From assembly GCF_000315625.1 (NCBI RefSeq), contig NW_005434647.1, forward strand, positions 356,936-420,935: a stretch of DNA of 64,000 bases. The letters are read 5' to 3'. This DNA is from Guillardia theta CCMP2712. Its lineage: Eukaryota > Protista > Cryptophyta. Of the stretch, positions 3,001-60,956 are shown piece by piece (within the stretch, counting starts at the first letter, position 1; each line of letters begins with the position of its first letter). The notes under the pieces were generated by a model. The model saw only the letters and a program-made list of their open reading frames with translations. It was not told the origin of the DNA and did not search any database. Position numbers and translations under genes: made by a program.

Positions 3001-3029
3001 GGAGCGGCAGAGGTTGGAGGGAGGGGAGC

Positions 3030-3067
<38 letters not shown>

Positions 3068-3073
3068 AGCCAT
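1..3073 (-). CDS. Multi-PDZ protein (at least 3 CtpA/Tsp-like PDZ domains); 3' end lies beyond window start; start codon uncertain (2887, 3073 or 3085)
   Basis: Three PDZ units (CGVGIQ...GSPAEVEGVREGDEI; CGVGLQL...GPAERVGIRPGDFL; GEVGIQL...GSPGERAGVHPGDFL) joined in frame by short GT-AG introns; last exon runs off position 1. Confidence 0.8.
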
Positions 3074-3711
3074 GACGACGACCATGACGAGGAGGAGGAA
3101 GACGACGACGACGATGAGGACGATGAGGACGATGAGGATGATGAGGACGACGATGACGATGAGGAGGGCGGAGGGGGGAGGCGGCGCAACGTGCGGCCTT
3201 CCGATGGCAATGGGCTCTCCCTCAAGCTGATGCGATTCTTGCAACGCTCTGAGTTTGACGAGGAACTCTACGAGTTTCTCTACCATGGGCTCTCAGATAT
3301 TACCGTCGCCCCCATAGGCGAAGAGCAGGTACGGTGCTCTACCTCCGCAGCGTCCCTGCAAGCGCTGACGATCCTCCCCGCAGCCGCTGCAGCTGTTCTC
3401 CCTCTATCAGGCGTTCACAGATGTAGCCGATCCTTGCACCGTGGCACCTCTCTAAACCTCCATGTTGGCAGATGTTCGACGAACGGTTCCGTCGCTTCAT
3501 GTCGCAAAACGGCTACTCTTCGTTAGAAGCTGTCTACAGGAAGCTGGAGGAAGAAAACTCCAACAAACCGAGGGTAAGCAAGGTATCCCGCCTGGCCCTG
3601 CTGACGGCTGCATCCTAGACTAGAAGGTTTCTCAGTAGCCTGCATGCTGGGATGCAGTACGAGTCCTTCGTTGAGCTCGCCCTGGAGTTTCAAGAGGCCC
3701 CTGACGAGTGA
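2975..3711 (+). CDS. BART (ARL2-binding) domain protein with acidic N-terminus
   Basis: Exons 2975-3328, 3384-3422, 3472-3573, 3619-3711 (GT-AG introns of 55/49/45 nt, all phase 0) give LMRFLQRSEFDEELYEFL...LFSLYQAFTDMFDERFRRFM...FLSSLHAGMQYESFVELA, matching the BART helical pattern; start could alternatively be M at 3230. Confidence 0.72.
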
Positions 3712-3879
3712 TGGAAACAGAACAGGAAGAGGAGACCTCCAAGTATGTCTAACAACTGTCGCGTGAGGGATCGCATGCTGGCTGAGTTTGATCCCGACTT
3801 CTGTGCTTCTTGCTTGCGCCCTCCACGTCCTCCACGTCCTCAGGCTTCGACATCCGATGATCTTGTCCGACGAGCTCTT

Positions 3880-4930
3880 GATGCCGCACCGTACGGAGTC
3901 CGATCACAGAGAAACACTTGTCATATCATAAGTAGTATCACAGAGTTCCTACAGTCACTGTCACTCCGGAGTCACGCGGTCCTGCTGAACTTCGAACAGG
4001 CTCCGATTCGCTGCCAGCCGCCTCACCGTGGCCCTCAACTTACTGAACTCATCGTGGCTGAGTCAGCGGCCTGGCGGTCACCGGGTGCAAGCAGTGGCAC
4101 GGTGAGGGCCTCTCGCCGCCAGTGCGGCCGGTCCGATCCGAGCCGCCGTGACCGTCCGGTCGGCAGCCTCAGTCCGCCGGGCGCCGGGAGACGCACTTAA
4201 CTGCGCGCAGGACAATTCCCCCGCGCCGGCATGCGGGATGCGCCCGCGCGCGGCCCGGGCCGGCCGGGCGGCGGGCCCACACTCCGTGCCCGGGCAGCCC
4301 TGAGTCGGCGGGCCGGGCCCATCCGGCCCAAAAGTAGAATTGACGCAGAATGATAGTCTAAAGCATTAAAAAAACATTTTGAGGCCAGGCCAGGCCCCGG
4401 GTCACCGTCCAGCTCTTCTGGCAGAGCGGCTGTGACTCAGTGACAAGTGACTCTTGCTCAGCCGCCACTCCGGGGCCGCCCGCCGGGCGCGGCCCGCCGC
4501 CGCCTCGGAGCCGCCCGGCTGCCAGCGGCCGCTGGCACCGTACGGTACCGTCAGCCCCTCCCGGTCCCGGACGGTCCGGCCCCCGAGCCTACGGCGGGAG
4601 CGGCCTCGGCTGAGTGCCAGACCATCGCCGGGACGCGGGGGGGGCCGCAGAGTCGGCCCGGATCCGATGATCATCGTCCGGGGTACACGGGCAATCATCG
4701 GCGGCGATCATCGGATCCTATCATGGCATCAGTGATGATCGGATCGGGACCCTAAAGCCTGGCGTGCCGCACTGAGCTGGCTGCGGCCGCCGGGCGGCCG
4801 CCTGGCCCGGCCGGGCCGGGCACCGTGAGAGTCGGACCGGCCGCGGTCTGCCGCCGGGATCTGTCACATCTGTGCACTGAGTGCCCAGCCTGATCCGAGG
4901 CTGTGCCACGGTGCGCGGCCCAGGGCTGTG
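3880..4930. repeat. GC-rich intergenic tract built from short palindromic words
   Basis: Dense CCGG/GGCC, CGGTACCG, TCAGTGAC, GGATCCGATGATC words; ORFs here are low-complexity R/P/G/A on both strands. Confidence 0.6.
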
Positions 4931-57291: not shown

Positions 57292-58670
57292 ATGGCTGTG
57301 CACATCAGGAAGTACAATGATCACGATGACGCGGCCGTGAAGGAGCTCTCGGAGAAGACGGTCATGGGAAGCTCCATGGCGTCGATCATCAGGAAGCTGA
57401 TAAACGTGAGTTTGTCTCCCTCATGATGTTTCCCTTCGCACTGCGAGTCTTTCATTCGATCTCTTCTTCGAGCCCTTGCCCAATCTTTTTGGACATGCGA
57501 CAACCTGCCCTCTGCTACACTCTTGGAGGTCAAGGAAGTCGCGCTGATGGTTCTCTCCAGGTCTTTCCTCGCTATTCGGGGACTTACAGACACAGGGCGT
57601 CGGAGTTCCGACGCAACGAGATCTTCGTGGCCGAGATCGAGAGGCAGCTGGTGGGGGTGGTGAACTTGGGGATCAAGGACGTTTACCTCAAGGGGAAGCT
57701 AGCAAAGATTGGGTATGTGTTTGGTCTGCGGGTGTCTGAAAAGCATCAGGGAAGGGGCATCGGGATGAAGCTCATGCAGGAGGTGGAGTTTGCGGGGAAG
57801 GCGGCCGGCTGCTCGCACTTGATCCTGACCACCAACCGAGACAACAAGAACGCTCGGAGGCTGTTCGAGGACAACTTGGGTTACTCGTGCATGTCCGATC
57901 GGTACATCAGCTTCAGCCCCTTGCACGCCGTCAAGGATGAAAGCTGCACGCCGGTCCAGCTCATCACATCGCGGGAAGAAGCAAGCAGGGTGCACCAACA
58001 GTTCCACGTGGGGAGGGACTTCTCCCCCGTGGATGAGCAGGAGATCGTCACGTCCGAGGCGTTCCTAGGGGCCCTCTACACGAGGAGGGAGCAGGACAAG
58101 TCAGAAGCCTGCGCCTTCCTGTGGGACGCCTCCCTCTCGAAGAAGCTCATCTTTGCCGGGCATCTGCCTAGCTTCTTCAGCCGCCCCACGTCCTACCCTG
58201 GAGTGCTACTTGTCTGTCTGGGGGTGGCAGGAATTTGCGTCGCTCACCTATCCTCCCTCTTCCTGCAGAAGCGCATGGGGCTGCTGCTGGGAGAGGTCGT
58301 CTTCGCGGCCACGTGCGCATACTTCTGGCGAAAGTTGAACAACTTGATCAGCTTCGTAGCTCAGCGTGAGATGAAAACTGTCAGAATCTTCGGGCACGCA
58401 GGCCGAGGTCCCAATTCTGGCACTCTCTTGAAGAGCATCTTTGACGAGGCCAAGGTCAGGAGCAGGAGAGAGTTCAAGGCAGCGGTGGTGGTGTACAACA
58501 CTGACACTCTGGATCCGGTGCTAGACGACCTCTTTTCCCCGACTAACGTGTTGGGGATGCCAAAGAGGAAGAGATCCTTCACTCTCTTCCTGCAGAAGAA
58601 GCTGAGCGACGACGAAGACAACCTGCCTCCCCACCATCCCAACATGTACTTTGACCCCCGGTACATCTAG
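57292..58670 (+). CDS. HOOKLESS1-like GNAT N-acetyltransferase with hydrophobic insertion
   Basis: Exons 57292-57405 and 57561-58670; HIRKYNDHDDAAV, IGYVFGLRVSEKHQGRGIGMKLM, TNRDNKNARRLF..NLGY, C-terminal YFDPRYI (cf HLS1 FVDPREF). Confidence 0.8.
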
Positions 58671-58890: not shown

Positions 58891-60741
58891 CTACTTTGCG
58901 GCAGAGATGCGATCAAGCCCGCCGACCATGCAGTCTTGAAGCAAACCTTTGCAACCGTCCTGCAAAAAGAATCAATAGATCTCGGCGTCGTCTCCAGTCT
59001 GAACCTCGATCAAATCAAGAACCTTCTCAAACACCTGCTTCCATATCAGATGTATGCGCTGAATTTTTCCTTCTCCCCAACCTGTCCTGATGGCTGCATC
59101 CCTCTCCCTCCGTAGTATGGATCAGGAATATCCTGGATCCAGGTTAAAAAGCGGAAGAAGAGGTCGAACGAACTAGCGAGGGATGTAAAAGAAGAACAAC
59201 GAAAGAGGACGACGAGAGCGGTGAAGGAGAATGGGCGTACAGTTGTCATCGTTCCACTCCGGCAATATTCGGTGAGTCTCTTCACCTTGCAACAAGATTA
59301 CTCCTTGCACGACTGGTATCGTCTTGCTGTCTCTTCTCTTTTTCCTCTCCCTTTCTTCTAAAATCTCTCCTCTAACCCATCACCGTTTCCCCCCATACAT
59401 CTTTAACACGCTGCTCGAGCTCTCCTCTTTTCCCCTCCCCTATCTTCCTCTTCTTTCTCTCCCCTTCCTCCCTCACTCCTCTCCCCTGCCTGTACCTTAT
59501 CATCAACACTTCCGCGCAGCCCCCAGTAGGAGGCAGCTGCCTGTACCTCGACACGATTCGCGTTGTCCATGATGACAACAAGATCTGCGCGCTGCAGGTC
59601 TTGAGGCCAGACGAGTCAAACTCTCTCGTTACAGCACGACTCTGCGCTCCTCCCTCACCTTCCTTGGTCATCACCTTTGACTGCCTCCCAGCGAGATTCA
59701 GCCCTGCTCGCAGGTGACCCGTCAGCCTCAGGTTGCAGGTTCCGACAGCATCGAATCCCGGTTACCTCTCCTTGACGCATGCGAGACCATGCGAGGATCG
59801 GACGCTTCTACTTCGATGTTCGACGAGACCTCTGGCTTGAACCAGTTGTTGGTGCCGCTCCCTGTTCCCTCCATCAGTTGAATCTAACCATCCCGACTAG
59901 GAGCTTCTGAAGGTGAATCTTGCCGTCTACGCTGAGATACATCACGCAGCTTTTTTTTCCTATTCTATGTCTCGCTGGAACTTCGACAGATCTCCCAAAC
60001 ATACCAGTGCTGCAGGAGGAAACTTCAAAGTACGAAGACAGTCCGTCGTTCTTGAGGAGAGTCTTCATCGTTTGCTCAGCAGCAGGTGATCTTGAACTTG
60101 TATGAGATGGACACAAACATGACAAGAACAATCACCTGCATGTGTTGCTAAGATCAACGAAGAGAATTCGAACTTTCCTCCCGGCAGCGAGCGCCTCCTT
60201 GGTTACGGAGGCCTCAATCCCTGAATTCTTCTCTTTCTTGGCCACCATCGACCTGAGAAGCAATGAGCGGGGCAGAGAGAAGAAAGGAGGATGCAACGAG
60301 AGTGAGAGCTAAAGAAGTCGAACCTGTGATATCTCAGCCGCTCTTCGTGATACTTTAATCTTTCCTCGTGATACTTGATCCTGCCAAGTAAAGTATCGAT
60401 ACCAACGATACGAGCAAAGCAGGGAATAACCTGGATTCGTGATATCCTTTGTCCATGTTCTGATCCTTGGGAGCCCATGGACCGATAGGCCATAGCTGGG
60501 CTACGACATCCATCCTTCTGCGACTTGCCATGCGAGTAGAATGGGCAGGACATCTGAAAACCTAGTAAAAAGTTGACAGCAAACTCGACATGATCTCTAC
60601 GCACTTCTTGGAGACGAAGGAAGAGGAAGGGGAGAAGGAAACAAACAAGGAAGGTTTCGATGCAGAGCATGACATGAAGGCCTCTGCTGAGCCCGCCAGC
60701 ATAATCAGCCCCGCCAACATTCGCAATGTCGCTCCTGTCAT
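58891..60741 (-). CDS. Plastid-targeted low-molecular-weight PTP-like protein with Asp in place of the nucleophile Cys
   Basis: Signal MTGATLRMLAGLIMLAGSAEA|F; RILFVDLSNTCRSPAAE; DPRMVSHA; DIPDPYYGG; FEKVLDLIEDGCKGLL. Confidence 0.85.
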
Positions 60742-60956
60742 GGCGCAGCGTGTAGACTTATTACACCCCATACTGACCCCTCAATTCTCCCTAGTAACCA
60801 CCCGTTCCCAGACCCCTTCCATCAATTGTCTCAAGCGCTATCTATCACTTGCAGCCTTCACTGAGTGCCTGAGGCTCACTGAGTCAGGACGCACGCGGTC
60901 ACTTTGCTTCCAACTTGATCACTTGTGGACAACCCTGGCAAGCCTGCAGGCGAACA

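Follow-up and report, generated by a model that had tools for sequence, protein, structure and literature searches.

A cryptophyte clade of LMW-PTP family proteins with aspartate in place of the catalytic cysteine, seen from a Guillardia theta gene

The gene and its exons

The window analysed here, a stretch of 64,000 nucleotides of Guillardia theta DNA, contains a nuclear gene of 12 exons on its minus strand (58891-60771). All 11 introns are GT-AG, no stop occurs inside any exon, and the exon peptides map in order onto the database model of the gene, P0007, which has 241 amino acids and covers exons 3-12 together with the end of exon 2. Inclusion of exon 1 and the whole of exon 2 gives an extended model of 329 amino acids, 88 residues of which are N-terminal to P0007. 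The Pfam, structure, homologue and tree work was carried out with P0007, and the 88-residue extension was examined exon by exon and against the orthologues. Every feature described below lies on the minus strand.

Exon 1 (60605-60771), which is absent from P0007 and is proposed in the present analysis, provides the start codon, a hydrophobic signal peptide ending in G-S-A-E-A, a Phe and the start of a Ser-rich transit peptide. An in-frame TGA is found four codons upstream of its ATG, and its GT donor and phase match exon 2. Exon 2 (60431-60553) encodes the remaining transit peptide and a linker; P0007 begins with its last eight codons, M-D-K-G-Y-H-E-S, and its A-Q-L-x-P stretch aligns with the orthologue motif A-Q-[LM]-N-P-V-E. 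Exon 3 (60324-60380; P0007 residues 10-27) carries the Y-H-E-E-R-x-K heptad repeat of a His/Arg-rich helix.

The P-loop is divided between two exons. Exon 4 (60136-60252) runs from a linker through strand beta-1 into the loop, of which it encodes the first half, F-V-D-L-S-N-T-C, in the context R-I-L-F-V-D-L-S-N-T-C. The codon at the position of the nucleophilic Cys is GAT (60153-60155), which specifies Asp61 in P0007 (149 in the extended model). The exon ends at 60136 with the AG of a split Arg codon and is followed by a 45-nt GT-AG intron (60091-60135), which separates Cys from Arg and has an in-frame TGA as its first codon. Exon 5 (60005-60090) resumes with A|TCA CCT, giving R-S-P-A-A-E, and continues through helix alpha-1 and strand beta-2. 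The spliced loop thus reads V-D-L-S-N-T-C-R-S-P, that is, Asp-x5-Arg-Ser, and the junction is spliced identically in P0007 and in the Hanusia phi transcript P0001, to which exon 4 is 87-88% identical. The read-through intron tail of P0001 shows no resemblance by eye to the window intron, in contrast to this 87-88% identity of the exons.

Among the downstream exons, exon 6 (59766-59861) encodes an enlarged and rebuilt W-loop, G-T-N-N-W-F-K...E-V-E-A-S-D-P-R-M, and exons 7 (59659-59703) and 11 (59005-59034) were mapped onto P0007. Exon 8 (59496-59599) encodes D-L-Q-R-A-D-L-V-V-I-M-D-N-A-N..., its acceptor having been fixed by tblastn with prokaryotic LMW-PTPs. Exon 9 (59241-59285; V-K-R-L-T-E-Y-C-R-S-G-T-M-T-T) contains a clade-specific R-S-G-T and is present in P0007. 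Exon 10 (59082-59132) holds the general-acid D-loop, D-I-P-D-P-Y-Y-G-G, and a clade-specific six-residue insertion, and exon 12 (58891-58959) encodes the C-terminal helix and a TAG stop. Pfam and PDB searches with single exons were weak: only exon 5 scored, reaching positions 12-39 of Pfam LMWPc (E = 0.08) and the structure 2cwd (E = 0.95).

Searched as a whole, P0007 matches Pfam LMWPc (PF01451) with 89.5 bits against a cut-off of 23.2, over profile positions 1-144 of 144. Among proteins of solved structure, Synechocystis Slr0328 (5o7b, 1.7e-15) is the best relative. The AlphaFold2 model has a pLDDT of 87.5 overall and above 90 across the domain, with the four-stranded alpha/beta fold and the P-loop predicted between beta-1 and alpha-1; the top Foldseek matches of this model are all LMW-PTPs, with TM values by target of 0.82-0.90. 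Two specialized members of the family were considered and rejected. For a thioredoxin-coupled arsenate reductase (ArsC), TIGR02691 gave 20 bits against a cut-off of 174, and the nucleophilic Cys is absent. A protein arginine phosphatase (YwlE/DARP) would agree with the Thr of the P-loop, but the Cys is lacking, the D-loop is of the D-P-Y-Y type and the YwlE match is about 1e-5.

A single replacement of the nucleophile

In the HMMER alignment to Slr0328, the Asp falls on the nucleophilic Cys of L-F-V-C-L-G-N-I-C-R-S-P. The splice reading and this alignment together bear out the preliminary description, which had recognised the family (a fold TM of 0.9 accompanies the Pfam score), had read the GAT as Asp in place of the catalytic Cys and had noted that Cys (TGY) to Asp (GAY) takes two base changes. 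It had also described the Asn, the second Cys, Arg-Ser and the DPYY loop (59132-59082) as intact in an otherwise undamaged gene, and all of these are present (N64, R67, S68 and P195-D-P-Y-Y-G200 in P0007 numbering). Relative to the canonical type, the window shows two further departures in the P-loop, Gly to Ser and Ile to Thr.

The same substitution occurs in a group of 44 sequences, all of which read [VLI]-D-L-[SAG]-N-[TV]-C-R-S, so that the Asp withstands the comparison with orthologues that the preliminary description had put forward as its own refutation test. All named members are cryptophyte algae; the group includes Hanusia, Teleaulax, Proteomonas and Baffinella, as well as Tara Oceans contigs and several transcriptomes. 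Every other homologue checked has Cys (224 of 224, from sets of 105 and 119), and the alignment column at the nucleophile contains Asp in 15/15 clade sequences versus Cys in 105/105 others. The Asp sequences form one clade with a support of 100/100, or 99 when the P-loop columns are removed, on a stem branch of 0.58, and this clade is nested inside the plant APH/cyanobacterial Slr0328 type. As judged from tree and alignment, Cys was replaced once by Asp in this clade, and the Asp has persisted from then on.

The surroundings of the Asp are equally distinctive. The P-loop Asn, second Cys and Arg-Ser are invariant in the clade; in both the Asp and the Cys groups, N64, R67 and S68 do not vary and P-D-P-Y-Y-G is 100% conserved. 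The Ile of the P-loop has become Thr in 93% of the clade and the Gly has become Ser or Ala. The substrate loops carry clade-specific changes, namely the enlarged, remodelled W-loop and the six-residue insertion after the D-loop, and His123, Arg186 and Gly188 are newly invariant. The His/Arg-rich heptad helix at the N-terminus is also specific to the Asp clade, with His and Arg 92-100% conserved at a seven-residue period; AlphaFold2 predicts it in P0007 as one long helix (residues 3-34), and a homodimer prediction for P0007 scored 0.20, the mark being 0.32, which weighs neither for nor against dimerisation. A search with the heptad helix matched only mitochondrial IF1 (1hf9), at a non-significant E of 2.9; the two share a similar H-H-E-x-E-I/E-I-E-R pattern, which at this E value is a lead only. 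The His-rich helix of IF1 is a pH-sensitive oligomerisation switch. Read from these sequences, the single-origin clade, the rebuilt substrate loops and the added conserved helix go beyond the preliminary description.

The gene is single-copy, and a search of the genome found no canonical (Cys) copy of the APH/Slr0328 subtype. Apart from this gene, the genome encodes a canonical protein whose P-loop is YwlE-like; that protein, too, has a signal peptide with Phe after it. An exhaustive phmmer search with the 39-residue P-loop exon matched only the Hanusia fragment. With this fragment as query, a metagenome scan gave no match, and a word search restricted by a length window recovered only the fragment itself. 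A scan of genome contigs returned only prokaryotic Cys-type LMW-PTPs, which served as alignment references. No description of the Asp clade was found in the literature searched.

Soundness of the gene model and predicted targeting

An Asp at this position could reflect an error of sequencing or assembly, or a gene decaying as a pseudogene, and we regard either as having a negligible chance of being true. Sequencing error, already thought unlikely in the preliminary description, is ruled out because the 43 further sequences of the group come from other data sets (other assemblies, transcriptomes and metagenomes) and all show Asp, encoded by both GAT and GAC. The Tara Oceans copies differ from one another at three nucleotides, all at third codon positions. 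Editing of the RNA back to Cys is ruled out as well, since several of the Asp sequences are transcripts. Decay is refuted in practice by the regular introns, the stop-free exons, the coverage of the full Pfam profile and the transcripts known in four named relatives. A separate question is where the protein goes. The exon 1 join could be wrong, leaving a cytosolic protein that starts at the Met of P0007, or the presequence could deliver the protein to the ER or the periplastidial space only; P0007 indeed starts within exon 2, without a signal peptide, and the Hanusia fragment begins at a later Met. Against this stand the in-frame stop just upstream of exon 1, the in-phase GT-AG joins and the total length of 329 residues, close to that of the complete orthologues (304-326 amino acids), all of which open with a signal peptide and have Phe or Trp directly after it. 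The part of exon 2 upstream of the P0007 Met, moreover, aligns with the A-Q-[LM]-N-P-V-E region of the orthologues. By inspection, the presequence has the bipartite layout of nucleus-encoded stromal proteins of complex red plastids, a signal peptide and then a transit peptide: in the window it runs L-A-G-S-A-E-A and then F, and in the orthologues the corresponding residues are G then W, or A then F. An F, Y, W or L at +1 is the rule for stromal, not periplastidial, proteins (PMC12136025), and the Arabidopsis homologue AT3G44620 is found in the chloroplast proteome (PMC2291561). We therefore consider a non-stromal location quite improbable and infer that the protein is imported into the plastid stroma, in line with the plastid location proposed earlier.

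Catalysis or binding at an aspartate P-loop

The loss of a catalytic residue marks a pseudophosphatase, and here the nucleophilic Cys is replaced: the Cys-x5-Arg-Ser/Thr signature gives way to Asp-x5-Arg-Ser in the window and in 44/44 group sequences. Sequence alone is insufficient for such a verdict, because LMW-PTPs of Drosophila that had been classed as pseudophosphatases turned out to be active in assays (PMC7772506). What can be said from the residues present is that a thiophosphate on the first Cys would be impossible in the Asp protein. The overall explanation that we consider best, at about even chances of being correct, is an intact and conserved Asp-clade gene with a stromal product that would carry out Asp-based catalysis on a changed substrate. 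The P-loop would still seat the phosphoryl group. Thiol chemistry would be gone, and the Cys-Cys switch could no longer inactivate the protein by oxidation. The Asp carboxylate could be the nucleophile and form an acyl-phosphate intermediate, or it could activate water as a general base, and the substrate may have become a labile one such as a phosphoramidate. The preliminary description had set a stromal pseudophosphatase, acting as a phospho-ligand or redox sensor, beside an enzyme with altered chemistry. The Cys-Cys switch is what makes canonical LMW-PTPs redox-sensitive, and with the first Cys gone the redox-sensor idea is not favoured.

Carboxylate-based, oxidation-insensitive catalysis is favoured over pure phospho-ligand binding because the general acid and the other catalytic helpers are invariant down to 47% identity. 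The opposing possibility is that the protein binds a phospho-ligand without catalysis, as a true pseudophosphatase or a naturally occurring substrate trap; this falls short of being probable and nevertheless has substantial weight. In such a protein, the P-loop and D-loop would hold a phosphorylated protein or metabolite, with the Asp mimicking the charge of the thiolate without reacting, and inside the plastid the ligand would be shielded, sequestered or scaffolded, perhaps by way of the N-terminal helix. The only precedent cited points this way and against the favoured catalysis: a classical PTP with a Cys-to-Asp change is reported to be able to bind substrate and to be catalytically deficient, and the D2 domain of PTP99A, which naturally bears Asp, is inactive (PMC3172300). 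The invariance of the Arg, of the backbone-shaping Asn and Ser and of the two pocket Tyr is in keeping with a binder, and the rebuilt W-loop and added helix fit a change from enzyme to reader. Energetics are a further consideration, as formation of an acyl-phosphate from an ordinary phosphomonoester is uphill. Known Asp-nucleophile phosphatases use Mg2+, and no metal site is evident in the protein. On the other side, every group sequence that extends over the D-loop (42 of 44) has the general-acid Asp, a residue that a mere binder should not require; this conservation fits a pure binder too, because the D-loop with its pair of Tyr contributes to the form of the binding pocket as well. The gained Thr of the P-loop looks like a retuned active site rather than a relaxed one. 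This residue is a determinant linked to phosphoarginine preference (PMC7772506), which is why a phosphoramidate-type substrate is possible for the catalytic reading.

Taken to its full extent, the catalytic reading becomes a metal-independent Asp-nucleophile phosphatase on a Cys-x5-Arg P-loop, acting in the stroma on a high-energy N-phospho substrate. The phosphoryl group would pass to the carboxylate as an acyl-phosphate; the donor hinted at by the P-loop Thr is phosphoarginine or phosphohistidine. Oxidation, which shuts down thiol phosphatases in the light, would not inactivate such an enzyme, and stromal pH might gate its activity or oligomeric state through the His-rich, IF1-like helix. 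All of these features together we consider unlikely.

Thiol catalysis is the defining feature of the Cys-x5-Arg phosphatases, in which Cys-to-Asp changes are known to us mainly as laboratory mutations or from tandem domains that have decayed. In the present case, an entire algal lineage carries Asp at the nucleophile with all other catalytic residues frozen, in its only copy of the plastid APH/Slr0328-type enzyme. It offers a natural protein in which to ask whether a carboxylate can be functional in a PTP P-loop or whether the protein is a purpose-built phosphate reader. If catalytic, it would represent redox-proof phosphatase chemistry in an oxidising organelle; if a binder, it would be the first LMW-class pseudophosphatase, as far as we found described. 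Either outcome would be informative for signalling by phosphorylation in complex plastids, a subject that to our knowledge is poorly known.

By sequence, the best relatives are plant APH (AT3G44620), an active tyrosine phosphatase (PMC9345830), and Slr0328; 5o7b matches at 1.7e-15, and plant and cyanobacterial proteins at E values of about 1e-20 to 1e-23. The Asp protein has in common with them the fold, the P-loop Asn-x-Cys-Arg-Ser-Pro-Ala-Ala-Glu, the D-P-Y-Y-G-G loop and a C-terminal F-E-K-V-L-D-L-[LI]-E-D helix. The Asp clade differs from them in its changes of Cys to Asp, Gly to Ser/Ala and Ile to Thr, in the loss of the Y-H-E-G motif of the W-loop and in the gain of the insertion after the D-loop and of the heptad helix. 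The nearest canonical relatives form its sister group and comprise green-algal LMW-PTPs (Scenedesmus/Tetradesmus) and the unnamed algal proteins P0136-P0139, with E values of about 1e-27 to 1e-30. These share with the Asp clade a W-loop insertion of about 12 residues with a conserved Trp, but retain F-V-C-L-G-N-I-C-R-S-P and Y-H-E-G and have neither the heptad helix nor the insertion after the D-loop. YwlE of B. subtilis and DARP of Drosophila resemble the Asp protein in fold and in having Thr for Ile before the second P-loop Cys (PMC7772506); they differ in keeping the nucleophilic Cys and in a narrower pocket, and their sequences are far more remote (E about 1e-5). PTP99A D2 and PTP1B C215D show the same Cys-to-Asp change at the nucleophile of a Cys-x5-Arg loop, a change reported to permit substrate binding (PMC3172300), but belong to class I, whose fold differs from that of the LMW class. 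In PTP99A D2, further catalytic motifs have decayed and restoration of the Cys does not bring back activity, whereas in the Asp clade the other catalytic residues are invariant. PTP1B C215D is said, in work by Romsicki et al. from 2003, to keep a weak, acid-shifted and oxidation-resistant activity.

Gene structure and the aspartate codon

The exon structure of the LMW-PTP gene was drawn by eye and then refined by tblastn with prokaryotic LMW-PTPs and by P0007, the 241-aa database protein model of this locus, which was retrieved by query alignment of the exon pieces and references. The gene comprises 12 exons on the minus strand, from 60771 to 58891. When each exon was checked separately by script, 11 of 11 introns were GT-AG, the exon peptides fell at consecutive P0007 positions and every split codon yielded the P0007 residue. 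No second genomic placement of P0007 was found elsewhere in this genome.

At the nucleophile position of the phosphate-binding P-loop (canonically Cys-x5-Arg), the codon at 60155–60153 (minus strand) is GAT, encoding Asp. The P-loop exon terminates in R-I-L-F-V-D-L-S-N-T-C plus the AG of a split codon at 60136, followed by a 45-nt GT-AG intron (60135–60091, minus strand) in which TGA is the first in-frame codon. The exon after it opens with A, then TCA CCT, giving the spliced reading V-D-L-S-N-T-C-R-S-P-A-A-E, and the identical junction is found in P0007 and in P0001, a Hanusia phi transcript fragment of the orthologue. The preliminary description, which had reported GAT in place of the expected family nucleophile and a minimum of two base changes from Cys, was correct on both points. 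The general-acid D-loop, D-I-P-D-P-Y-Y-G-G, is encoded at 59132–59082 (minus strand).

The start Met of P0007 lies within exon 2 (M-D-K-G-Y-H-E-S). Upstream of it, exon 1 and the greater part of exon 2 (within 60431–60771, minus strand) encode an N-terminal extension, assessed exon by exon by reference to orthologues, with an ATG at 60771 and an in-frame stop four codons further upstream. The extended model has 329 aa, compared with 304–326 aa in complete orthologues, and the P0007 annotation seems to lack 88 N-terminal residues, among them the signal and transit peptide found in every complete orthologue. The hydrophobic signal peptide encoded by exon 1 ends in G-S-A-E-A and is followed by Phe; full-length orthologues have a presequence of like layout, in which +1 is Trp or Phe. 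Among algae whose complex plastids are of red origin, F, Y, W or L at the transit-peptide +1 position marks stromal proteins, and its absence periplastidial ones (PMC12136025); the Arabidopsis homologue AT3G44620 has been found in chloroplasts (PMC2291561). Thus, a predicted stromal location of the Asp-type protein is well supported at the sequence level.

A 415-aa open frame on the plus strand (57423–58670) converges on the 3' end of the gene, and roughly 220 bp separate the two stop codons. On visual inspection, its product resembles an acetyltransferase that has a membrane segment at the C-terminus.

An Asp clade within the LMW-PTP family

P0007 covers the entire Pfam LMWPc profile at 89.5 bits (cut-off 23.2), and ArsC models scored far under their cut-offs. 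Among solved structures, the closest is that of the cyanobacterial LMW-PTP Slr0328 (5o7b, 1.7e-15); in the alignment to it, the Asp takes the place of the nucleophile Cys, and the Gly and Ile of the P-loop are replaced by Ser and Thr, respectively. The AlphaFold2 model, built with 134 homologues as input, reached a pLDDT of 87.5 (above 90 in the domain) and a pTM of 0.82, and LMW-PTPs made up all of its best Foldseek matches (TM by target up to 0.90).

A word search with P0007 recovered a sharply set-off group (E 1e-60 to 1e-88, 47–63% identity) that includes Teleaulax amphioxeia, Proteomonas sulcata, Baffinella frigidus, Hanusia phi, other transcripts and Tara Oceans metagenome contigs. One member is annotated just as 'phosphotyrosine protein phosphatase I superfamily'. 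The motif [VLI]-D-L-[SAG]-N-[TV]-C-R-S is present in all 44 group sequences, 43 of which come from data independent of this assembly, and the Asp singled out earlier is conserved in orthologues; the D-loop is intact in every sequence that covers it. Cys occupies the nucleophile position in 105 of 105 other eukaryotic and cyanobacterial homologues and in 119 of 119 bacterial ones. The Asp is encoded both by GAT (here and in the Tara contigs) and by GAC (in another lineage); the Tara copies differ at three sites, all third codon positions. The exons are 87–88% identical to those of Hanusia, and the read-through intron tail of P0001 is, by eye, unlike the intron here. RNA editing that restores Cys is excluded because several group members are transcripts.

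In a maximum-likelihood tree, 15 Asp representatives formed one clade (100/100, stem of 0.58 changes per site), which was kept after dropping five P-loop columns (SH-aLRT 99). The clade is nested within the plant APH (AT3G44620)/cyanobacterial type, and its sister comprises green-algal and other algal Cys-type proteins, which share with it an enlarged W-loop. A search with the Pfam model and a canonical algal query, run exon-wise in six frames and hence of limited sensitivity, found no Cys-type copy of the APH/Slr0328 subtype in this genome; therefore, the Asp form here seems to have taken the place of the canonical plastid enzyme, not to have been added to it. The only LMWPc matches which that search gave elsewhere in the genome were two distant canonical genes (L001 and L002) and the degenerate L003.

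L002 (G000:C37:537316-540603, open frame 1327–2025) is a single-exon gene whose product, a candidate plastid arginine or tyrosine phosphatase, combines a canonical P-loop of the YwlE kind (C-T-G-N-T-C-R-S-P) with a D-P-F loop and carries a signal peptide of its own, after which comes Phe. L003 (G000:C14:676393-679680, minus strand, about 1501–1788) is an LMWPc-like frame of 29.5 bits beside an extended Ala-Pro repeat, and its P-loop region (V-L-F-V-S-N-M-C-Y-R-A) is degenerate; it could be a further non-canonical member of the family, or the frame may arise artefactually where an intron was read through. In the Tara contigs L013–L015, the orthologue (3001–3963) is intronless, against 11 introns here, and these compact contigs (up to 22 kb) leave spacers of about 130 bp to neighbours encoding a 555-aa TPR protein and a 200-aa protein. 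Many Oscillospiraceae-type gut bacteria carry a fusion of canonical LMW-PTP and barstar (PF01451 and PF01337, about 235 aa; L005 from the MAG Candidatus Limivicinus, P0002, P0006–P0022).

Retained pocket and altered surroundings

Invariant in both the Asp and Cys groups are the F-V preceding the nucleophile, Asn64, Cys66, Arg67, Ser68, Ser92, Asp117, Arg119, P-D-P-Y-Y-G (195–200) and the F-E-K-V-L-D-L helix. The phosphoryl-binding, phosphoryl-polarising pocket is under strong purifying selection, and the loops that face the substrate were remodelled when Cys gave way to Asp. Specific to the Asp clade are Asp61 (100%, against 100% Cys in the other group), Gly63 to Ser/Ala, Ile65 to Thr (93%), loss of the Y-H-x-G W-loop motif, His123, Arg186, Gly188, Thr191, a G-Q-x-S-G-Q-V insertion past D-P-Y-Y-G-G, a C-terminal D-C pair and, N-terminal of the domain, three and a half Y-H-E-E-R-x-K heptads.

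These heptads (60324–60380, minus strand; P0007 residues 5–28), whose His and Arg recur with a 7-residue period and are 92–100% conserved throughout the clade, are absent from Cys-type relatives and form a single long helix in the AlphaFold2 model. No Pfam family covers the helix, and its sole PDB match, the His-rich coiled coil of the mitochondrial ATPase inhibitor IF1, is non-significant (E 2.9). A role in pH sensing or oligomerisation is a possible lead.

Catalysis or phospho-ligand binding

The interpretation offered in the preliminary description finds partial support. Lacking the first Cys, the protein cannot form a thiophosphate intermediate on it. In LMW-PTPs, the Cys-Cys oxidative switch also involves the first Cys; its loss would remove the switch, so that stromal oxidants should leave the protein unaffected, a point that speaks against the 'redox sensor' role put forward in that description. 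Catalysis may be retained via the Asp carboxylate, a reading to which we give an even chance and which we favour because the general acid and all helper residues are invariant over deep divergence and the P-loop gained a Thr of the phosphoarginine type. Phosphoramidates are energetic enough for carboxylate phosphorylation. The main rival, a protein that would be a pure phospho-ligand binder, is a serious possibility that falls short of being probable: Cys-to-Asp PTPs have been described as substrate-binding yet catalysis-deficient, and the natural Cys-to-Asp case, PTP99A D2, is inactive (PMC3172300).

Searches of the paper library used here on LMW-PTP pseudophosphatases, Cys/Asp variants, Guillardia and plastid LMW-PTPs found no description of the Asp clade. 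It is a variant within a known family, not a separate kind of system, and it resembles YwlE and DARP in its P-loop Thr, a residue tied in both to phosphoarginine specificity (PMC7772506).
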